Assembly: GCA_020184695.1 (NCBI GenBank)
Contig: JAANOX010000151.1
Span: 1-64,000 of the forward strand
Direction of reading: 5' to 3'
DNA from: Histomonas meleagridis 2922-C6/04-290x
Taxonomy: Eukaryota > Protista > Parabasalia
DNA length: 64,000 nt
The notes under the pieces were generated by a model. That model ran no database searches, was not told the DNA's origin, and was given only the letters and a program-made list of their open reading frames with translations. Each line of letters opens with the position of its first letter. Positions within the stretch are counted from its first letter, which is position 1. The translations under genes and the position numbers were made by a program. Of the stretch, positions 1,893 through 62,871 are shown piece after piece.

Positions 1893-4007
1893 ATGTTTGG
1901 GCACGCTTGTGAAGAGCCTATTTCACTAATAACACCACATCCATGCAACCTCCAAGTCGCAATTTACACATCAAAGCAAAGTCTTACTATTCTTGACATT
2001 ATGAAAAATCGTTCAATTCGTAATTTTTCAGTTTCCGGCTATCTCCCAAAAGAAGTACAAAACTCTGGTAAGCCTGCGATAGGTATGTTTTTTATTGACG
2101 ATATTTCATGCCGCGCTTATCAATCCGTTTTAAAGTCAACATTTCAACAACTTCCATCAAATAACTATTTAGCAATATTATACCCACGTGGTTTTTTAAC
2201 CTGGGGCCATACATTTAATAATCCAACATGGAATCCATTTGAATTTGTTGCCACATGTGCTGCCCAAGCACCTGACTCACTTATCGTTGGTGATAATTCA
2301 CATACTCTTTATTCAGTTTCATTGGTAAATGGGACCACTCGAGTATTTGCTAATACTTCTGGTACCCCATCATCATTATTTATAACACGTTTCGAAGGTG
2401 ATCACTTTGGTGTTCTATCATTATCATCATCAGGGATGGCAGAATTCTTTTCTTCGTCAGGTAATCTTTCGACCAAGTTACAAATAGATAATGGCAAAAG
2501 CATTTCATTTGACATATTCACCAGTTCTCTTTTCTTAGTTGATGACAAACGCACAGTTGATTCATATTTAATATCACCCACAAAAATAGACAAGACAGGT
2601 GAATGTAGTTTTGCAGGGGTAACAGCCGGCGACACCAAGCCTACCAACTACAACATCCAACAGATCACTTCCTGTATGTTACCAATTGCTTACAAGCCCT
2701 TATTTTTTGCCATCTGCGACTCATCGTCACTTTTGATCGGCGGCTCCACAAAAGTTGTACAAAAAGTGACGTCGTTTCCGATCATGCACATAAAACGACT
2801 CAATTGTACATCATTAAAATGTCATCCGACAGACCCAACGTTACTGTTTCTAACTTCTGACAACAATTTAATTGTCTTAGATATCTTTGCACATTTACCA
2901 CAAATTATTCCATCATTACCGATACCTGATTTTATCCAAAAATCGAATCAACCAGATGGAATTTATAACATTTCTCACAACAATTATTTCATTTGTGTCA
3001 TGAATCACTCATCACAAACATATACAATATATGACAAGAAAACACATAAAATCATTGCGACGAATCAAGCGCTAAATGTTGTGTTAGGGCCAAATAAGAA
3101 ATACGCACATTTCATACAACAAACGTCACGAAAACATAAAGAATTAACATTAAAATATTACATACAAATATTCGATGAAACTACACTCGGTAAGGCTATA
3201 CATATAATACCTCCCGAAGATACTCCATATCCTTTACGTTTGGTGACGTTCGATGATTACTTCGCGTTGATTTGTGGCCATTCGAAATTAGATACGTCTT
3301 TTAACCTTCAATCGCAAGGACATACGAAGGCTTTTGTTTATAGTTGGAACACATTAGAAAATATTAACTTAAATATTGAAGACGCATTTCTAATCGCTTC
3401 GTCTTCGCCTTTGATAGCTTTGGCTTCTGCAAATGGTTATGTAGTATATGATACAAGTAATGGTAATATGGAAGAAAAATGTCGTCGGCAAAAAAGAGTT
3501 TTCGATTTTAAGTTCTTCGATGGAAGACTTTATCTTTTGACGACTGACGGACTTGAAATAGATAATTTCAAATCAATCGAATTGGTCTCAAGTCGTTTCT
3601 CACATATCCCAACGAAAGAAAAAAACGCACCGTCAATACCTGTGAACGCTTTGGCAATTAAAGAGGTTTCATCAACGTTTGTTACCGTTGTTGAAACTAA
3701 TGGTGTCGAAACTACTGTGGGTATTCCTGAAGAAGAAATAGATGATAATGGAATCCCTTTGATTGTAAGTATCGCATTGTCGAAAAGCCCAATCGAAGCG
3801 GCAGGTTCAACATATCAAACTGCTTCCGAGAAAGAAAAGAAACAAATGATGTTGATGATGATGGGATCTTTGGGTTGGGATGCTGTGGAACCAGTGCTGT
3901 CTTGCTCGGAATTGGCTGTCGCTGAATATGCTATGGGTAACGGTGATGGCGATTACCAAAAGGCGTTTAGGGAATTCTTGAAAACAGAGCTCGAGATCGA
4001 TGAATAA
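1893..4007 (+). CDS. Uncharacterised 704-aa beta-rich protein, probably with beta-propeller (WD40-like) domains
   Basis: Long ORF of repeated short hydrophobic beta-strand segments with a short helical C-terminus; no diagnostic family motif recognised. Confidence 0.55.
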   Translation: MFGHACEEPISLITPHPCNLQVAIYTSKQSLTILDIMKNRSIRNFSVSGYLPKEVQNSGKPAIGMFFIDDISCRAYQSVLKSTFQQLPSNNYLAILYPRGFLTWGHTFNNPTWNPFEFVATCAAQAPDSLIVGDNSHTLYSVSLVNGTTRVFANTSGTPSSLFITRFEGDHFGVLSLSSSGMAEFFSSSGNLSTKLQIDNGKSISFDIFTSSLFLVDDKRTVDSYLISPTKIDKTGECSFAGVTAGDTKPTNYNIQQITSCMLPIAYKPLFFAICDSSSLLIGGSTKVVQKVTSFPIMHIKRLNCTSLKCHPTDPTLLFLTSDNNLIVLDIFAHLPQIIPSLPIPDFIQKSNQPDGIYNISHNNYFICVMNHSSQTYTIYDKKTHKIIATNQALNVVLGPNKKYAHFIQQTSRKHKELTLKYYIQIFDETTLGKAIHIIPPEDTPYPLRLVTFDDYFALICGHSKLDTSFNLQSQGHTKAFVYSWNTLENINLNIEDAFLIASSSPLIALASANGYVVYDTSNGNMEEKCRRQKRVFDFKFFDGRLYLLTTDGLEIDNFKSIELVSSRFSHIPTKEKNAPSIPVNALAIKEVSSTFVTVVETNGVETTVGIPEEEIDDNGIPLIVSIALSKSPIEAAGSTYQTASEKEKKQMMLMMMGSLGWDAVEPVLSCSELAVAEYAMGNGDGDYQKAFREFLKTELEIDE

Positions 4008-4509
4008 AGCTGACTACTGATGAGTGAACTTTGATGTGATTTCATCGGCCGATGTATTGAATTTTCAATACAACGATAAAGGTTTTGTTAGAAGTCCAAA
4101 GTCGTCTTTTGACCAAATGAATGAATGGATTGAAGAAGTATTAATAATTAAATTGAAACTATATGAGAACTTTTAAGTTTTGTTGACGATTTTAAAGTTT
4201 AGGGAAATATATTGATCTTTTTTAATATGATAAAATGACAAAAAAGCTGAATGATGTGATTTTTTTTAACATGCTTGCTAACGTAAGGCTTGATGTGATA
4301 TCAATTTTATTCATTTTTATATATAGATGTTATGAAATGTTGGTATTGATTTTATGCAAAAATTGAAATTTGACATTTTTGTTGATGAAGAGCGATATAT
4401 GTATTATAACATTCTTTTAATTATTTGCAAAGTATGAGAAAATCGCAGTTTTTAAAAAATGCCAAAATTTCCTAAGAAATGTCAACAGTGATGACCATTT
4501 TATTCAAAA

Positions 4510-5553
4510 ATGTCAAGTGAAGACCAGACAACACAACCCAAGGAATTTTTAAACTTAGTCAAAAAATTTAAGTTTTCTCGAATCCTAAATTCAATTCCAC
4601 AAACAAAAAGCGTTTTCATACTGGGTACCATAGATGAAAAGGATGCTATTATGTTATTGGAAAAAACTCATTTCGATACAAATGATAATGCTTTTAAGTA
4701 AAGTAAAGACGGAGATAATACAAGTGAAGCTGAATTTTCATATATTAAATCGATAGAAGATTTGAAAGTAAATGACTCAAATGATATTTATCATTGGGGT
4801 TTAGCTACCCTAAAGCAAGACATGGAACATAATCCCACTGCTAAGATAACTTTGATATATCCTGCCAAAGACAGTCACATTGAAAAATATGGAAAACAAA
4901 AGTCCCACTTCATTAAAGAGACACCGGAAGTTTATCATGAAATTGTTGAACCTTATATTAAAGAGATGTGCTCAGAAAGAAGTTTAAAATGGGTCCACAA
5001 CATCTTATATGAAGGAGCCGAATCTGATCATGTGATTTACAAAGAATACGATCCAAATGATTTATACAACAGTTTCGTTATATTGCCAGATATGAAATGG
5101 AATGGTACTGATTTAGATTCCATGTATTTAATTACCATAGTATATCGAAATGACATTCATTCATTACGTGATTTGAAACCAAAGGATCAACCATGGTTAA
5201 AAATGTTGATGAGAAAGATTAAAACTGTTATATCCACTAAATATTCGGTTCGTCCTGATGAATTAAGAATATATATTCATTATCAGCCATCGTATTATCA
5301 CTTCCATATTCATATCATGAATATATTAAATCCAGGATTGGGATTTTCAATTGCAACAGGAAAAGCAATTTTACTGGATGAAGTAATCGAACAATTAAAT
5401 TATATAGGAAATGAAGGATATGAAAGTAGTACTCTATATTATGCACTTGGAGAGAACCACGAGCTATGGAAAAGAGGCTTGGATAAAGTGGTAGAAAAGC
5501 AATTGGAAGAAGATGAAGGAACACTACTAAATATTCCTCCACAGGATAAATAA
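4510..5553 (+). CDS. DCPS: m7GpppX diphosphatase (scavenger decapping enzyme DcpS/Dcs1), interrupted by an in-frame TAA at 4699-4701
   Basis: ORFs 4510-4701 and 4762-5553 are in the same frame. Contains the N-terminal LGTID...AIMLLEKTHF and NDIY motifs, LPDMKW, and the HIT motif [12 protein letters not shown]. Confidence 0.93.
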
Positions 5554-6623
5554 AAAACCAATGGTAAATATTTAAATTAGTGATTTTGACTTCTTCAAGC
5601 CAATAATAAGGATAATGTTTTAATAAAGTTCAGGAAAGAATGAAATTAATCAAAAATTTAGGTAATAATGCTATTGATTAATATGGTTTTATTAATAAAG
5701 TTACAATTTTTTTTTTTTAATTTATTTCCTTTCGTTTAATTTAATTAAATCAGATTTAGCAAAAGTTTTTATGTTTTGCAAGTAATACGAATATTTAAAA
5801 ATTGAAAATGTATCTATTAACAACTTGCTTAATTATTGAATGCTTATCTGTGATACCACAAAAAATTTTTTGGAATGAATATGTATTGAATTGATTTAAT
5901 TGTGTAACTTCTGACCGTTTATTACAGTAATGTGAACAGATACCTTTTATGATATCAATAGCTATGCCTAGTGATGATATTAATACAATAAACACAGGAG
6001 ATAAAAATTTGGATAATTTATCAACCTGTTTGAAATTCCTTATTGAGCTTGAGAAAACGATAACGTTTGTGATTTTTTTCTTTATAGAACGTTTTGAGGA
6101 CGTTTAAAGACGTTAAACAATCACACCTATATAAACCTAACAATTCTGGTCTCATCTTTTGAAAATTCAAAAAATATATGCAGCATTAAAATATTATTAT
6201 CTTATTATAAATTTGAATTTTATATTTGAAAATGAATTTTTAACATTAATAATTCATATGAAATATATTTTCAAACTTAAAAGAAATCTTATAAGAAGAA
6301 AGCTATTGGCATCGCTGTATTTTTAACGGTTTACATATAGGATTTTGCTTAAAAATTTTTTCTTTTGATTTTTTTTTTCTATTAGAATTTATTTGTTTAA
6401 TAAAAAAATTCATACAAGAATGTTTTCGTATTTAAGATGTTTGCTCTAAAATTAATAGATTAAAAAATTATTTACAAAATTAATAGTTAATTTTTTTTAT
6501 AAAATCGAACTTTAATATCAATATATATTATAAATGTTTCAGCGTATTGGTTATTTGTGTTTATTTTTGCTTAATTAGCGAGTTTAGAGAAGCTGAGTCA
6601 AGATTTTGGTTCAGTACATGACC

Positions 6624-6649: not shown

Positions 6650-9600
6650 ATGTCTTCAGCATTAGACCGTCAGTTAATTGAATATCAATCAAGACCTAAG
6701 GATGAGTCTGGTGCTCGCAAAACAAAGCAATCATTAATTTTCGATCCAAAAGAAGCATCTTTTATTGATTCAGATACATTTTACCAAATTGGTTATCAAG
6801 GATTTGTTAAATTGCAAGAAAAGGAACCAAGGCTAAGCGAATTTGAAAATTCTATTTTTTCATATGCAAATTCACAAATTGATCCTTTGTTTTTAACAGC
6901 AAGTGAAAATCAACAGATATTTGATGAAATTGAGAACTTACTTTACTTAATTTCAGATTACATATTACTTCCAGAAACAGTTCAGATTCTTGAATATTTA
7001 ATTCAACACTTTGCTGTTAATAGATTATGCCCATCTATTTTAATTTTAACAATCCTTCCTTACCTTGAAACTTCATTTTTTACAAGAGTTCTTCAAACAA
7101 TTCCATTTAAAGCATTACCACATGAATTCAAAATATTAAGACCTTTTGGTTCAGTTGCATTGTCCAAGAAACCAATGTCACGTAAAATACTTAAAGATTG
7201 GATTAATAGTCGACCAGTTCTCTTTCAATGGATTGTTGGATCAGCAAATAAATTTGCCATCACTCATCCCCGAGGCACGTTTGCCTCTTTTGTAGGCGTT
7301 TTATTTACAGAGTTAGCCTTAGAAACAACCAATGACATTATAATACGATCAATTATAGATTCATGTAAATCATCACTTAATTCTGAAGACCCAGCTTTAG
7401 CCCCTTACACACTTATGGCTGTTTGTTCTGTCAATGAGAAACAACAACTGAATCAACAAATCTTGAAAACATTTTCGCAATTAATACATCAAAACATTGA
7501 TTTACTTCATAACCACTTTAATTCAATGTTTTTAGCGGCCGTTTATTTTTCAGAGCATTCCGATACGCCGCCATCGGTTGGATTTATTAGTGCGCTTGGT
7601 CATCATCTTCAAGAACTTGATCAACTTTCTAAGAAATATGAATTACGAAAATTTGTTGAGAGTTGTATCAAAACAATTTCCTCCAATTTAACAAATGACG
7701 ATTTAATTCGTTCACTTATTGCAATATTAGAAACTTCATTTTTTGATGAGACATCAACATTATTAATGTTAAATATCTCACAAAATTATAATGAAACAGA
7801 ATATTCACAAGAACTTATTCAATCAATTGTTTCACATTATCCAACATCTGTTACAACTGAAGTACTTGAAGCATTAAATAAATCGAATGTTAAAATTGAT
7901 CCATCTCAAATATCACCACATAATTTAATTAATCAACTTTCTAATCCTGAAAACTTAGCATCATTATATTCTAATCCAGAGTTACCATATGAAATAGCTT
8001 CTAAACAAGTAGTTAATTCATTAGTAATTTCACAAAATCATAATCAAACTGATGCAATTATACCAATTCTTCAATATTTCGAAGGAAGAGCACCTGAAAA
8101 CTTATTGAAATATTTGGTTGATAATATATTTATTGATGATAGTGATTTTTCAATTAAATTAAATAAAGCATTAAATCAGTATGGAAATGGAATCGCTCCA
8201 TTTTTTAATGGGATTCCTTCAACTAATTCGGAAATTATTAATTTCTTTGTTAGCCAAGAAGAATTACCGAATATTGATTCATTTCCATTTGCTGTAATTA
8301 ACTCAATTAAAAATAATGATACTACTGTATTATTAAATTATTTACCAATTCGAAAGATGAGATTTAATAAAGTTATGTCAATAATAGAACAGTTAAATGA
8401 AACAAAAGATATACCATTTAATACAACTGAAGCACAATCAGCATTAATTTTATATTTAATAAATGAATATTCTTTAAATAATGAATTACCAATTGAAACA
8501 GTACAAAAAATCTTTGATTTTCCATCATTAAAATGTATAGCATTTATTATTAAGAACATAAAGAACAAAGCAATAATTCGAGAAGCATTTGAACGAACTA
8601 CAGATCAACAAAAACGAATTCGAACAAATATATTAAATTATTTCCAAGTAATTGCACCTAAAGTCGAAAACATATTTGAAATATTACCAATTACTTATAT
8701 ATCATTAACATATTTAGAACATATTGATCAAGCAATTTTAATACTTAGATCAATACCATTAAAGAACAAAGAATTAAAATATATATTAACAACTATTTTA
8801 AGACAATCACAATATTTCAAATCAGATGAAAGATTATTACAAACAGTTTTTAAATCGATATCAAATAATCCTAAAAGTCGTGAATTACTTGATAACATTT
8901 GGTCGAATATTATCACATCAAAAGGTTGTTTAAGGTTTTGGAATTTAACACATGATCAAGGAGTAATTAATGTATTACCTAATTTTATAAATGATGATGA
9001 AACACCACAAATATTATATGAATTCTTAAAAGAATATCCTGAAAATGAACAACTTAAAGAATTGGCGTTAAATTCAATGAATTCTAGTATACTTAAAGCA
9101 GTTATACCATTTTTATCTATTGATAAAATAACAACTATATTACCACCAGTATGTTTATATCCGAAGTTTTATTCACAATCATTTACTGAATTCTTTTTAA
9201 GTCAATCATTTGATGCAAATATATTAAAGCCTATTTTCCAATCAAAAGATAAAATTATTTTAATTCAAACAATGGAATTAGAACCACCAAAGATATTTAA
9301 AGAGAGTTTTAATAAAATGAAATCAAAAGCATTAATATTACCAACAAATTTAATATTAGAATTAATACCTTTATCTCATCAAATTACAAATATCGAAAAA
9401 TTATTACCAGAATTCTTTGAAATCCTTAAAACTAAAAAATCACAAAATTTAATATTCCCATGTTTAACACTTTGTTTAGAGAATTCATCAAAATATTTAT
9501 TAGATAATTTTGATGTAATATTATCATCTTTATCTGATTCTACATCACCACATATTCATTCATCAGCATTAAGACTTATTCAAGAATTAGCAACAATATC

Positions 9601-11626
9601 ACCTGAAGTTGTTGCTAAACATTCACAAAAATTATTTACTACATTATCAACGTCAACATTATTTATAGATGATACAGCCAACTTAAACAAAATTAAACAA
9701 TTATTATCATCAATATTACCAATTTTATCTAAAACTAATACAATTGATGAATTATTAGATTTCTTTTCATCGAATATTAATAATTTTTCATTAGATCGAG
9801 CATCACAAATAATGTTACATAGTATTAATTCATTAGGTAATGATTCATATAAAATATTTCAATCATTATTAAGATATAAACAAAATGATTTTTCATTATT
9901 ATTAATTGAACAATTATCACCACAACAAATCTTACAAATATTAATTAAATTACTTGAAACTGATACTGATTGTATTGATTTCATATTAGAAATACAATTA
10001 CCACCATTATCAACACAATTATTAAAATTATTCCAATTATTATCTAAGAAAATTGATGTTCAAGGTTTCATACAAAAGACTTGGGATTCATTTAGTATCA
10101 CCGATTTCATTAAATTATTAATTGAATTTATACCATCTGATATCGATATATATCCAATATTTCATCAACGAATTACTAATGAACCTTCATCATTATATAT
10201 TAAATTATTACCAGTCCTTCAAAAAGAAATTAAAGAATATAAATCATTAGAAAAGAACTTATTAATGTTATCAGAAATTACAAATTGTATTGATCAATCA
10301 GATTCATCTAAATTAATAAGTGTCATTAAAGTAATATTAGATGGAGTTAATACAAATTATTATACAATTCCTAATCAAGTTCAAGCGTTATGTTTCTTTG
10401 CTACTTCGATTGAACGATTTAATTTAGTTTTATATGAAGTATTTCCAAAAGTTATCATATTTGCTTCAAGTTTATATTCATTTATAGTTAGTGAATCAAT
10501 CGAAAAACTTTTATCATCTACAACAGCATCAATTTGTTTATTATTAAAGACATCACCAAACTTTTGTATTCAACAATTACCACAAATTTGGACTGATTTG
10601 TTATCACCATTTGTGTTAAACACTGATTTATATCAAATGGTTAAAGATTCATTTGAAGCAATTACTACAACAACAGATATTAATGCATTACTTATGCCAT
10701 TTATCAGAGCGTTTTCAAATAATAAACAAAATCCAAATTCAATAATATTATTATTTAAAGCATTCCAAAATAATATTATTCATACAAACAAAGATGATTT
10801 CGAAGATAATCATCAAAGCATTTGTAAGTTCTTCTTATTAGCATTTAATACAAGTTATGAAGATTGGGATATAATGATACAATTCCAAGATGCAATTATC
10901 TCTGCATTTTGTACATTCTTAACACAATTAAATGAAAGTTTACTTACAGATAACTTAAATAAGTTTACAGAATTCTTCGAAAAAATTATGGATCATAATC
11001 AAGAGGATTATATTACTAATAGATTATTCTTTGTACGTACTGAAAATGCTATTTTACAAGGATTACAAAAATCAATTTCGAAGTTTTATGGATCAATATT
11101 ACCTATAATTTTACCATTCTTAAATGAAACAAATGATTCTCTATTTAATGAAAGACAACTTACAATAGAATGTTTACAATTAATACAAATTATGGCACAA
11201 TATGCTGATGACGATTTCTTTGATGCTGATAGATTTAATAGTGTATTAAATGCGATTATCATACATGCTAATAAAGTTGTAACAAATGTAGACGAATATA
11301 TTAAATTGATCATATTAAGTATAGCACCTGCTTTCACTGCTTTAATGGATACAACGAAAGATGAAATGTTATGGAGAAGTGCAAATCTTCAATTAATAGA
11401 AATGATGAAAAATGATGACTCGAGAATTAAAATTGGCGCTATGAAAATAGTAGATGAAGAATTTAAAGTAATCGGTGGTGAATTAACTGGTTTGTTACCA
11501 GAGTTGGTTCCTTATTTGGCTGAATGCGCTGAATATGCTAAAGGTGACGTTGATGTGATCGCTAGAGAAACAATACAAAGCATAGAAAATAGTATTGGTG
11601 AGCCAATAAATACATACTTTACATAA
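6650..11626 (+). CDS. UTP10: U3 snoRNA-associated protein 10 (HEATR1/BAP28)
   Basis: N-terminal SLIFDPKEAS...FENSIF...ENQQI...LEYLIQHF matches the U3snoRNP10 domain; long HEAT-like helical body; C-terminal LLPELVPYLAEC is BP28CT-like. Confidence 0.88.
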   Translation: MSSALDRQLIEYQSRPKDESGARKTKQSLIFDPKEASFIDSDTFYQIGYQGFVKLQEKEPRLSEFENSIFSYANSQIDPLFLTASENQQIFDEIENLLYLISDYILLPETVQILEYLIQHFAVNRLCPSILILTILPYLETSFFTRVLQTIPFKALPHEFKILRPFGSVALSKKPMSRKILKDWINSRPVLFQWIVGSANKFAITHPRGTFASFVGVLFTELALETTNDIIIRSIIDSCKSSLNSEDPALAPYTLMAVCSVNEKQQLNQQILKTFSQLIHQNIDLLHNHFNSMFLAAVYFSEHSDTPPSVGFISALGHHLQELDQLSKKYELRKFVESCIKTISSNLTNDDLIRSLIAILETSFFDETSTLLMLNISQNYNETEYSQELIQSIVSHYPTSVTTEVLEALNKSNVKIDPSQISPHNLINQLSNPENLASLYSNPELPYEIASKQVVNSLVISQNHNQTDAIIPILQYFEGRAPENLLKYLVDNIFIDDSDFSIKLNKALNQYGNGIAPFFNGIPSTNSEIINFFVSQEELPNIDSFPFAVINSIKNNDTTVLLNYLPIRKMRFNKVMSIIEQLNETKDIPFNTTEAQSALILYLINEYSLNNELPIETVQKIFDFPSLKCIAFIIKNIKNKAIIREAFERTTDQQKRIRTNILNYFQVIAPKVENIFEILPITYISLTYLEHIDQAILILRSIPLKNKELKYILTTILRQSQYFKSDERLLQTVFKSISNNPKSRELLDNIWSNIITSKGCLRFWNLTHDQGVINVLPNFINDDETPQILYEFLKEYPENEQLKELALNSMNSSILKAVIPFLSIDKITTILPPVCLYPKFYSQSFTEFFLSQSFDANILKPIFQSKDKIILIQTMELEPPKIFKESFNKMKSKALILPTNLILELIPLSHQITNIEKLLPEFFEILKTKKSQNLIFPCLTLCLENSSKYLLDNFDVILSSLSDSTSPHIHSSALRLIQELATISPEVVAKHSQKLFTTLSTSTLFIDDTANLNKIKQLLSSILPILSKTNTIDELLDFFSSNINNFSLDRASQIMLHSINSLGNDSYKIFQSLLRYKQNDFSLLLIEQLSPQQILQILIKLLETDTDCIDFILEIQLPPLSTQLLKLFQLLSKKIDVQGFIQKTWDSFSITDFIKLLIEFIPSDIDIYPIFHQRITNEPSSLYIKLLPVLQKEIKEYKSLEKNLLMLSEITNCIDQSDSSKLISVIKVILDGVNTNYYTIPNQVQALCFFATSIERFNLVLYEVFPKVIIFASSLYSFIVSESIEKLLSSTTASICLLLKTSPNFCIQQLPQIWTDLLSPFVLNTDLYQMVKDSFEAITTTTDINALLMPFIRAFSNNKQNPNSIILLFKAFQNNIIHTNKDDFEDNHQSICKFFLLAFNTSYEDWDIMIQFQDAIISAFCTFLTQLNESLLTDNLNKFTEFFEKIMDHNQEDYITNRLFFVRTENAILQGLQKSISKFYGSILPIILPFLNETNDSLFNERQLTIECLQLIQIMAQYADDDFFDADRFNSVLNAIIIHANKVVTNVDEYIKLIILSIAPAFTALMDTTKDEMLWRSANLQLIEMMKNDDSRIKIGAMKIVDEEFKVIGGELTGLLPELVPYLAECAEYAKGDVDVIARETIQSIENSIGEPINTYFT

Positions 11627-38539: not shown

Positions 38540-38788
38540 ATATAAATTGTTCAAGAAGTTGTTTAACTATTTCTGTATGACTATTTAAAAATGAATGCAT
38601 AAGTGCTGTTTCAAATATTTTAAATAATTTCCAAATATTATTTTGAAATATAAAATCATTAAAATAAATATTAAATATAATAAATAATTATCTTTAGCAT
38701 TAACATCAATTCCTTATTGTTCAAGAAGTTGTTTAACTGTTTCTATATGACCATTTAAAGATAAACACATAAGTGCTGTAAAAAATAA
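38540..38788 (-). pseudogene. Isolated two-cassette ankyrin fragment with a 68-nt spacer (38619-38686)
   Basis: Cassette 38687-38788 (102 nt) reads LFFTALMCLSLNGHIETVKQLLEQ*GIDVNAKDN, then the spacer, then IFETALMHSFLNSHTEIVKQLLEQ. Confidence 0.8.
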
Positions 38789-39498
38789 TTTAATTAGTTT
38801 GTAGTGCTGTTTTCAGTCAGAATTTAGTGCTTTCGTTTCCGTGATGCTAATCACGGTGAAGAACTTTAATCAATGATAACGAAATATATTCAAATCTAGA
38901 TGAATTTTATTTATTTATAGTTTCAAAAATCAATTGAAATAACATTTATGAAAAGATGATCAATGTTTCATAAGTTATGCTAAAATAATCGCTCATTCAA
39001 AGTAAGTGACAAATAAATTTGATTACTCGAATGTTTTATTCTAGACTTTCTTTTTTTACAGAGAAATAAACTCAACAGCATAAAGCAATCAATATTACTG
39101 ATTTAAAAGTTAAAGTTATCTTTACAAAATATAAAAAAAAAAAAAAAAAATCTTAATAAAAAATCCTTAAATTTGTTTTTTGTTATTACTTAATGATGTC
39201 ATTTTTTAGTCTAAACATTTGATGTTTTGTGTCTCAAACTAAAAATGATTAATCAAAAACTCTTCAATCTTGATAAAATAAAAAAGTGTATATTCACAAT
39301 ATATTAAATGTATATTGATATAAAATCAAAATATCTTATTGAAAATTTGATTTATTGGCAAACCAATAAGTGCTAAATTCTGAAGTTATTTGAAGAAATT
39401 AGAAATTCGTTTTAGAAAAGTAGTTGGTGGTTCCTCCTTACTTCTATTTATCGACCTTTTTTTTTAGCGGCAGCTATTGAATCGAGTGTAAAAGCATG

Positions 39499-60639: not shown

Positions 60640-62871
60640 ATGGACTTCATGAAAAGGCGAAAACTGCTTTCAAGAAAAACATCTGCATTTGATTGGAAAA
60701 AATTTATACTTTCATTAGAATCAAGTGTTTTTTCTTTAAATGAAGGTAATATTAAAGCTTGTGTTCAAAATACAATGAATTTATTTTCAGAAGTTGAAAG
60801 TTTTCCATTTTCGTTTAATCTTCTTCTTTGTAGATATATATATATATTCTGTATTTAAATTAAAACAATGTGAACCAATTTTATGTCTCACGTATTTGAA
60901 GTTAATAGAAAATTTAGAAGAAGAAATAAATATAAATAATCCAAAAATAATTTCATACTTCTGTAAGTTTCTTATAGAATTAAAAACGCAAGAATCATAT
61001 CATTTGATTCGAAAATTGGTTGGACAAAAACTTATTGTTTTACATTTTCAAGAAAACATGACAAAACTTTATTTTTCACATTATAAAACAAAAGAAGAAA
61101 TATCAAATATTTCAGAAAAAAGTATTCAACATTTTAAAGCATATATTAAAGCACTACACAAACATGATTTGAAACTTCATAAAAATTATATTAAAGAAGG
61201 AGTTAACCCAATGGAAATTGCAGAAGTTATTAGAAATGATGATGTTGAAAAATTGCAACAAATAACATCACAAACAAATTTTGATTTTAGCCAAACAATT
61301 GAATCATGTGTTTATGAAAAGGCATCACTACTATCTACACAAGGCACTACATTGATTAATTATGCAGCATTTTTTTCTGCTGTTAAATGTTTTAAATTTT
61401 TATTAATAAATGGATCTAATATTATAAATACAAAACAATATGCAATCGCAGGAGGGAATATAGAGATTATTCATATGTGTGAAAAAACTTATTCATTATT
61501 TAGTAATGTATATGAATCAGCAAATGAATATCATCGAAATGATGTTTTCCTTTATTTTTATGAAAACAAGAAAAACGATTTAAAAGATTTAACAGTTTTA
61601 GGAATTAAATGCATTCAACATAATAACTTAGAAATTTTATTTTTTCTAATAGACGAAGGAATGCAAATTAATTCTAAATTTATTGAGAAATTAATAAAAA
61701 TAGGAAATACAATGTTGATGAAATATTTTATTGAAAATCAACAGATTACAAAATCAGTTTTGCAAAAATTAGATTTTTGCAAATCATTTCAATCTTGAAA
61801 TCTTGAAATCATTAAATTATTTGCTGAACAAAAAGAATTTGATATAAATGAAAGAATTTTTTTTAATTATATGTTTATCTGATTTATTTTGTGTAAAAAA
61901 AGAAAGATACATTTGTTTCGCTAAATTGAAGTTTGTTTTGATTATATTTGACACCACTTATGTTTGCATGCAAAAAAGGATATACAGAAATAGTCAAATT
62001 ACTACTTGAACAAAAAGGAATTGACATTAATTATAAGCATATTTGTTCGTTTTATTTGTTATTTTTTTAATAATTTGATATTTCAAAACAATATTTGGAA
62101 ATTATTTTAACTATTTTGGTCAGCACTTATTTGGGCATCGAAAAATGGGCATACAGAAATAGTCAAGTCACTCCTTGAACAAGAAGGAATTGATGTTAAT
62201 GTTAAAGGTATTTATTTGTTTTGTTTCATATTAATTTTAATAATACCATATTTCAAAATAATATTTGAAAAATATTTGAAAAATTTAAAACACCACTTTG
62301 GTATGCAACTAAGAAAGGTCAGATTGAAGTTGTTAAGCTACTTCTTAAGCAAAAAGGAATTAATGTCAATGCATATAATATTTATATATAAATATTTATG
62401 TTTATTATTGTAACATAAGATTTGTTTAATTCGTTTAACATTTATTTTAATAATTTTATTTTTATTTTAATGATTTGATATTTATTTTAATATTTTAGCT
62501 TTTGTTTTCATAATTTTATGTTTATTTCTATATATTTCTGTTTGCTGTAACAATTTGATATTCATTTTCATAAATCTGAATTTGTTTGTTTTGTTTTATA
62601 CTCCACTTATGATTGCATGCAAGAAAGTTCACAAGGAAATAGTTAAATTACTTCTTGAACAAAAAGGAATTGATGTTAATTATAATAATATTTGTTCGTT
62701 TTATTTATTATTTTTTTGAATAATTTGATATTTCAAAATAATATTTGGAAATTATATAAATTATTTGAGACAGCACTTATATTAGCATTTGAAAAAGGTT
62801 ATATCGAAATTGTTCAAATGTTAAAACATTGGATAACTGATGAAGAAAAACGTCACAAAAGAAGAAAGTAA
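60640..62871 (+). pseudogene. DUF3447 + six ankyrin-cassette gene, with a (TA)n frameshift near 60835-60846 and an in-frame TGA at 61796-61798
   Basis: DUF3447 core LINYAAFFSAVKCFKFLLING...YAIAGGNIEIIH; the same frame resumes NLEIIKLFAEQKEFDIN after the TGA; ankyrin cassettes at 61942-62043, 62111-62212, 62281-62382, 62591-62692 and 62761-62871 (stop TAA). Confidence 0.8.
61859..62760 (+). other. Five intron-like spacers: about 61859-61941, 62044-62110, 62213-62280, 62383-62590, 62693-62760
   Basis: AT-rich and frame-breaking (about 83, 67, 68, about 208 and 68 nt), all at the same point of the ankyrin repeat; no consistent GT or AG ends. Confidence 0.75.

Follow-up and report, generated by a model that had tools for sequence, protein, structure and literature searches.

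Did the parabasalid Histomonas meleagridis take up an mRNA-decay gene from a budding yeast, and does that gene still work? The question is raised by positions 4510-5553 (plus strand) of the window, the whole 64,000-nucleotide stretch analysed here (positions 1-64000 of contig JAANOX010000151.1, assembly GCA_020184695.1), which translate to a 347-codon DcpS-like protein. DcpS, called Dcs1 in Saccharomyces cerevisiae, is the scavenger mRNA-decapping enzyme, a pyrophosphatase of the HIT family that acts once 3'-5' mRNA decay is over and hydrolyses what is left of the cap, m7GpppN. The preliminary description of this DNA had proposed a transfer from a Saccharomycotina yeast and quoted six peptide motifs, all of which are present in the translation; the matching yeast Dcs1 motifs given there were confirmed by alignment to the S. 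cerevisiae protein (PDB 5BV3). It had, however, read the gene as an open frame and overlooked that codon 64 is TAA (4699-4701).

The DcpS locus is present in both H. meleagridis assemblies, on a 93-kb contig and on a 3.08-Mb contig (WSYJ01000060.1, GCA_020186115.1) that carries the same region and is 99.98% identical to the window. The genome paper gives these two accessions as Histomonas meleagridis assemblies and contains no mention of fungi, yeast, decapping or horizontal transfer (PMC8529796). The locus comprises the following features:

1893-4007, plus strand: upstream host gene, 704 aa, conserved in parabasalids, without a Pfam domain (orthologue search)
4440-5568, plus strand: transcript contig over the whole DcpS gene, unspliced (run X5 record 18, 0 differences, 0 gaps)
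4510-4698, plus strand: DcpS piece 1, codons 1-63, first half of the N-terminal (dimerisation) domain (PF05652 positions 2-46, E 1.2e-13)
4699-4701, plus strand: in-frame TAA, codon 64, in a variable loop of the N-domain (DNA sequence)
4702-5553, plus strand: DcpS piece 2, codons 65-347 and the terminal TAA at 5551-5553 (Pfam and PDB 5BV3)
5083-5106, plus strand: LPDMKWNG cap-binding loop motif (aligned to LPDMKWDG in yeast and LIPDLKWN in mammals)
5299-5316, plus strand: histidine triad H264-F-H266-I-H268-I, codons 264-269, catalytic motif (aligns with the HIT motif of 5BV3)
6650-11626, plus strand: downstream host gene, 1658 aa, UTP10/HEATR1-like with a BP28CT domain (Pfam PF08146; GC3 0.13)

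The TAA cuts the frame into open reading frames of 63 and 283 codons, and an uninterrupted frame of about 350 aa was not found. The two pieces were queried separately in database and structure searches; the tree, the alignment and local BLAST used the whole read-through frame, X standing for the stop. Piece 1 aligns to residues 3-46 of yeast Dcs1 (PDB 5BV3), and piece 2 supplies the remainder of the N-domain (PF05652 positions 47-104, E 2e-16) and the entire HIT-fold C-domain (PF11969, DcpS_C, E 1.9e-30). PF05652 is followed by PF11969, both above their gathering cut-offs, and the N-domain profile continues across the stop without a break.

Among solved structures, piece 2 matched S. cerevisiae Dcs1 (5BV3, E 3.8e-106) ahead of Chaetomium DcpS (1e-49) and mammalian DcpS (about 1e-44 to 1e-46). 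With S. cerevisiae Dcs1 (PDB 5BV3 and 6TRQ) the Histomonas gene has in common the two-domain layout of a DcpS N-domain and a HIT-fold C-domain, the histidine triad, the LPDMKW loop and a C-terminal GENH(D/E)LWKRGL motif, with about 58% identity over roughly 96% of the 283 residues of piece 2. It differs from the yeast gene by the TAA at codon 64, by D198N, by its AT-rich host codon usage and by its place on a parabasalid chromosome; most yeasts also have a longer variable loop in the N-domain. The near-identity to yeast claimed earlier thus holds inside the motifs, whereas overall identity to Saccharomycetaceae is about 58-62%. Human and mouse DcpS (PDB 1ST0, 1XMM and 1VLR) share the family and the catalytic motif with the Histomonas gene, and at the E values given above their similarity to the piece is confined to the conserved core; this is roughly the distance we would expect of a vertically inherited protist DcpS. 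An ESM Atlas look-up returned generic DcpS clusters only.

The residues have been kept well. Across 54 fungal DcpS sequences, 55 columns reach at least 95% conservation; the window copy carries the conserved residue at 54 of them, the sole change being D198N in LPDMKWDG, and it does so at 83 of 94 columns conserved across Saccharomycetaceae. Aside from the stop, the gene looks fully functional as judged from its sequence.

We then asked where the closest relatives of this protein lie. A word search of 5.8 billion proteins gave 247 matches, the best 120 of which were all Saccharomycotina (those with names were all yeasts) at no more than 62% identity, with Saccharomycetaceae ranking first among these 120 at 55-62%. 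The unnamed top matches sit on short branches inside yeast clades in the tree. When 1.84 billion representatives were searched exhaustively and without a profile, 1730 matched, headed by two yeast representatives at 301 and 286 bits; the next score was 223 bits. Ten representatives sampled below 223 bits were other fungi where named (Rhizina, Saitoella, Schizosaccharomyces, Kickxella, Puccinia, polypores and a chytrid), and those sampled further down the list were animals or a protist where named. Similarity is therefore graded, from Saccharomycetaceae through other Saccharomycotina and other fungi to animals and protists. No parabasalid protein of the yeast DcpS type was seen among the best 120 of the 247 matches or the best 150 of the 1730. 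Metagenome scans for the locus or for close relatives returned 0 exact matches and two loci at 39% identity.

Maximum-likelihood trees gave the same affinity. With 55 rows (LG+C20+F+G4 PMSF) the Histomonas sequence grouped with 37 Saccharomycetaceae rows at UFBoot/SH-aLRT 100/99. A second tree, of 36 rows and with an outgroup of animals and a protist, recovered the fungal species tree and joined Saccharomycetaceae and the Histomonas sequence at 100/100, nesting the latter several supported nodes deep within Fungi. Placing the Histomonas sequence outside Fungi, as vertical descent would have it, was rejected by the AU test (delta lnL 84.4, p 1.1e-10), which bears out the earlier statement that the similarity goes beyond vertical descent. 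Placement outside all Saccharomycotina was only marginally worse, with delta lnL 22.9 and p 0.038 in the 36-row set and delta lnL 16.6 and p 0.114 in the 55-row set. The fungal origin of the gene is decisive on this evidence, and the proposed Saccharomycotina source is upheld; bootstrap values tie the gene strongly to the Saccharomycetaceae lineage, whereas the AU test does so only marginally. We infer that the gene moved from yeast to protist, since in the trees the yeast sequences branch in the order of the fungal species.

The donor can be narrowed less far. By the AU test (p 0.53) no nested position fits better than one as sister to all the Saccharomycetaceae sampled, so that any donor genus is tentative. 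In a quick 99-row tree the Histomonas sequence formed a clade with Monosporozyma unispora, M. servazzii and Arxiozyma at SH-aLRT 99, a nesting that is unsupported in the 55- and 36-row trees. Monosporozyma-type rows are nearest by identity and by path length in the 99-row and 55-row trees. The m7GpppX diphosphatases of M. unispora, M. servazzii (Monosporozyma = Kazachstania) and Arxiozyma heterogenica (P0004, P0269 and P0282) are 59-62% identical to the Histomonas protein, have the nearest tree path and share a loop pattern with it: at the stop, Histomonas reads K-X-S-KD-GD against R-Q-S-QD-GE, found only in Monosporozyma/Arxiozyma-type rows. They differ in branch length, the Histomonas terminal branch being several times longer (0.75-0.86 changes per column against a median of 0.27-0.47 in the compared rows), and the sister relation to Monosporozyma/Arxiozyma is not statistically secured; so long a branch could distort placement. 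Arxiozyma corresponds to the former K. telluris complex, which are animal-gut yeasts, and A. heterogenica is one of the yeasts formerly placed in Kazachstania. The pig gut is dominated by Kazachstania; in culture-based studies of the chicken caecum Candida or Aspergillus predominate. Judged by sequence affinity, a gut-associated, Kazachstania-type yeast would be a plausible donor, and the gene was perhaps taken up through phagotrophy in the gut.

The nucleotide sequence points to an old transfer. The coding sequence is about 71% identical to that of the nearest yeast locus (L003), with 49% identity at third codon positions, and the similarity stops at the borders of the coding sequence, the flanks being without similarity. 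GC3 is 0.26 in the Histomonas gene as compared with 0.37 in this yeast gene, and 0.12-0.39 in the neighbouring Histomonas genes, in line with the earlier remark that the gene is AT-rich like its neighbours. The gene is a compositionally adjusted and probably old resident and no contaminant.

Its physical context is that of a parabasalid chromosome. Orthologues of the 704-aa protein encoded upstream occur in Tritrichomonas foetus (53%), T. musculus (49%) and Trichomonas vaginalis (34%). Downstream, beyond the 1658-aa ORF, lie genes for ribosomal protein L19e and Hsp70, ankyrin genes and the ciliary genes TMEM231 and Cluap1. In the DNA run of the genome project a single 3.9-kb contig covers 3000-4843 with 0 differences and thus links the first third of DcpS with the upstream gene, and the read depth over DcpS equals that of the flanks. 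Two assemblies, short-read contigs and the flanking genes together establish that the DcpS gene is physically integrated among parabasalid genes; the host-type flanks and the linkage put forward in the preliminary description are both borne out.

Runs of two other studies behave as RNA, as seen from an intergenic depth of zero and from an upstream-gene contig that ends in poly(A) at about 4023-4028. Besides the contig of run X5 that spans the whole gene, RNA contigs over DcpS were recovered from run X3 (4543-4999 and 5054-5718) and run X8 (4526-4991 and 5073-5562). Being covered by RNA contigs of its own, DcpS is a separate transcription unit that is unspliced and carries the TAA in its RNA; the contigs are collinear with the DNA, and the gene is intronless as first described. 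Both the DNA and the RNA evidence derives from assembled contigs, in which minor variants would be missed. The poly(A) site of the upstream gene (4023-4028) lies about 16-21 nt past its TAA. A DcpS RNA contig ends about 15 nt past the stop, which reads TAAA; UAAA is the trichomonad polyadenylation signal, and the 3' end of DcpS fits a host-type end.

What, then, is to be made of the stop at codon 64? The second assembly has it unchanged, and the RNA contigs of three runs (X3, X5 and X8) retain it. Because both assemblies and the RNA contigs agree, the TAA is not an error, and an assembly error at the stop was ruled out. It appears to be fixed in the available material, the isolates of the three studies not necessarily being different ones. 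We also considered an alternative code in which TAA specifies Gln. The long ORFs of the window terminate in TAA, TAG and TGA, with TAA ending 13 of 19, and one ORF of 18 kb has no internal stop; the genetic code is therefore standard and this candidate was discarded. A 27-nt GT..AG mini-intron (4698-4724) that would remove the stop was likewise ruled out by RNA contigs that are collinear with 0 gaps in three runs. By-eye inspection of the sequence around the TAA revealed no recognised readthrough context. In the alignment the column of the TAA is gap-rich and variable, and it holds Gln in Monosporozyma-type rows and the codon CAA in the yeast locus L003, so that a single C-to-T change (CAA to TAA) explains the stop.

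The DNA run contained a second DcpS copy located elsewhere in the genome, represented by three short contigs about 91% identical to 4820-5558 and at single-copy depth. Two nucleotides are deleted from this copy at the position of 5061, and its tail is shorter by 6 nt. The comparison of the two copies rests on partial contigs that begin after the 5' third of the gene, codon 64 lying outside the covered part; over the 155 comparable codons dS is 0.165, dN 0.058 and dN/dS 0.35. Set against the yeast alignment, the 21 non-synonymous differences between the copies comprise 12 at which the window copy has the yeast residue, 5 at which the other copy has it and 4 ties. The 12 of 17 polarisable differences at which the window copy keeps the yeast residue include the invariant P118, Y142, Y149, P193 and R213, whereas the second copy has lost invariant residues, for example by P193L and R213L. 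This bias of 12 against 5 indicates that the other copy is more decayed and that the window copy stayed constrained after the duplication. The combination of a long terminal branch with near-complete residue conservation likewise indicates purifying selection during nearly all of the time since transfer.

Taken together, these results make it probable that the gene came from a yeast of the Saccharomycetaceae lineage by an old transfer, was duplicated and kept under constraint, and is now interrupted in the window copy by a nonsense codon, this copy being likely a young pseudogene. The lineage of Histomonas would have acquired DcpS horizontally from a budding yeast that belonged to the Saccharomycetaceae or stood beside them; among the yeasts sampled, Monosporozyma and Arxiozyma (Kazachstania in the broad sense) come nearest. 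Judging from its residues, the acquired gene would have worked as a cap-scavenging pyrophosphatase. After the transfer it would have taken on the codon composition of the host and a transcript of its own, been duplicated and come under purifying selection, and the window copy would then have gained one nonsense codon in the codon 64 loop, most simply by CAA(Gln) changing to TAA. The window copy is most likely a very young pseudogene that is still transcribed, and within this overall picture we somewhat favour its recent inactivation.

The main alternative to a pseudogene is that the gene is functional, the TAA at codon 64 being read through or recoded so that a full-length yeast-type DcpS is made; near-cognate decoding would then insert Gln, the ancestral residue. 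A single defect in 347 codons, the retention of 54 of 55 invariant residues and of the histidine triad, the position of the TAA in a variable loop at a Gln-aligned column, and a stop fixed in the data of three studies while transcription persists would all suit such a gene. Against it, neighbouring genes normally terminate with TAA, no recognised readthrough context was seen at the stop, and a recent C-to-T nonsense mutation in an AT-biased genome is the simpler account of the same facts, so translation by stop-codon readthrough is less likely than a pseudogene and, in our judgement, unlikely. Quite doubtful is the further idea that the yeast-derived DcpS may be the working cap scavenger of Histomonas, still made by reading the TAA as Gln. 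A different source within the fungi has a better claim than readthrough, if still a tentative one: the donor may have belonged to some other or unsampled lineage of Saccharomycotina (for example stem Saccharomycetaceae or Saccharomycodaceae) and not have been a Kazachstania-type gut yeast. The position within Saccharomycetaceae is unsupported in the careful trees, where sister-to-all is equally good, and placement outside Saccharomycotina is only marginally worse; the SH-aLRT of 99 with Monosporozyma and Arxiozyma in the quick 99-row tree, the nearness of Monosporozyma-type rows by path and identity, and the loop (X-S-KD-GD against Q-S-QD-GE) shared only with Monosporozyma/Arxiozyma-type rows weigh on the other side.

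Readings that do away with a transfer altogether fare far worse. Had the gene come from yeast in the culture or sample, through contamination or a chimeric assembly, its very high similarity to yeast proteins would be expected, and the lack of a called gene at the locus in the gene table of either assembly would be in keeping. This is contradicted by a gene lying inside the 3.08-Mb contig as well as the independently assembled 93-kb contig, by the 3.9-kb short-read contig linking it to the upstream gene at a depth equal to the flanks, by its host-like GC3, by a DNA identity to the nearest yeast locus of 71% that is restricted to the coding sequence, by a closest yeast protein at 62% (best 120 of 247 matches among 5.8 billion proteins), and by the second, diverged copy in the same genome; we regard contamination as highly improbable. 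Fainter still are the prospects of vertical inheritance, that is, of a native metamonad DcpS that resembles the yeast enzyme by convergence or through a tree artefact. A long terminal branch could mislead trees, but similarity is graded with Saccharomycetaceae first and animals and protists last, the 100/100 clade lies several supported nodes inside Fungi, and the AU test rejects placement outside Fungi (p 1.1e-10).

A search for synteny in related parabasalids, suggested in the preliminary description, was uninformative on dating. In T. foetus and in a closer relative known from metagenomes (63% identity), the surroundings of the upstream gene's orthologue contain no DcpS-like sequence. Downstream of the 704-aa gene the gene order differs in T. 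foetus and in the 63%-identical relative, and since gene order is unconserved, synteny does not date the insertion. The orthologue with 63% identity to the 704-aa protein is found on two metagenome (Logan) contigs of 27-28% GC (L005:9326-11446 and L006:2259-4379), the source of which is a close relative of Histomonas; its neighbours on these contigs are Arf-like GTPase, IBD-domain and DHHC genes.

Most gene transfers known in parabasalids and other gut protists have bacterial donors, and to our knowledge eukaryote-to-eukaryote transfers with a donor at family level are few, with budding yeasts rarely the donors. The Histomonas case resembles the known transfers in that a foreign gene has become fixed in a phagotrophic gut-dwelling anaerobe. 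Unlike these, it involves a eukaryote donor at the level of a yeast family and an RNA-decay gene, whereas the known ones are metabolic or cell-wall-targeting. Gene exchanges between Entamoeba and parabasalids have been described (PMC4217692), and Giardia is reported to be without DcpS (PMC3282835). In the literature on DcpS in parabasalids or on such a yeast transfer we found no report at the level of titles and abstracts.

With a strong tree, host linkage, adjusted composition, transcription, duplication and past selection, the locus would represent a rare, well-resolved transfer between eukaryotes, in which a core gene of RNA decay passed from a yeast into a phagotrophic gut parasite that plausibly shared its habitat and put the gene to use. 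One genome would moreover offer a time series, a well-kept copy with a single fresh nonsense codon next to an older, decayed one. Were the full-length enzyme made after all, a working yeast DcpS would possibly have replaced or supplied a function that metamonads lack, and tolerated or programmed readthrough in Histomonas would be hinted at.

Annotators may wish to note that no gene is called at the DcpS position in the gene tables returned with both public assembly loci. The uninterrupted 1658-aa ORF at 6650-11626 is split in a public gene table into two genes of 496 and 329 aa, and the public annotation of the DcpS/UTP10 region looks incomplete.

Repeated sequence occurs at several places in the window. 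In the DNA run the depth over a stretch of about 70 nt just downstream of DcpS (5985-6060) rises to roughly 10-15 times that of single-copy DNA, and many contigs branch off at 5985-5988 and 6058-6062. The stretch, which runs into the 5' end of a 66-aa ORF on the minus strand (5795-5995), has the look of a dispersed repeat or of part of a gene family. Repeat cassettes that are AT-rich and related to one another (71-85% alike, about 85-250 nt long) lie in direct as well as inverted orientation at 1-261, 38547-38800 and 62062-62817 and probably belong to ankyrin/DUF3447 gene families.
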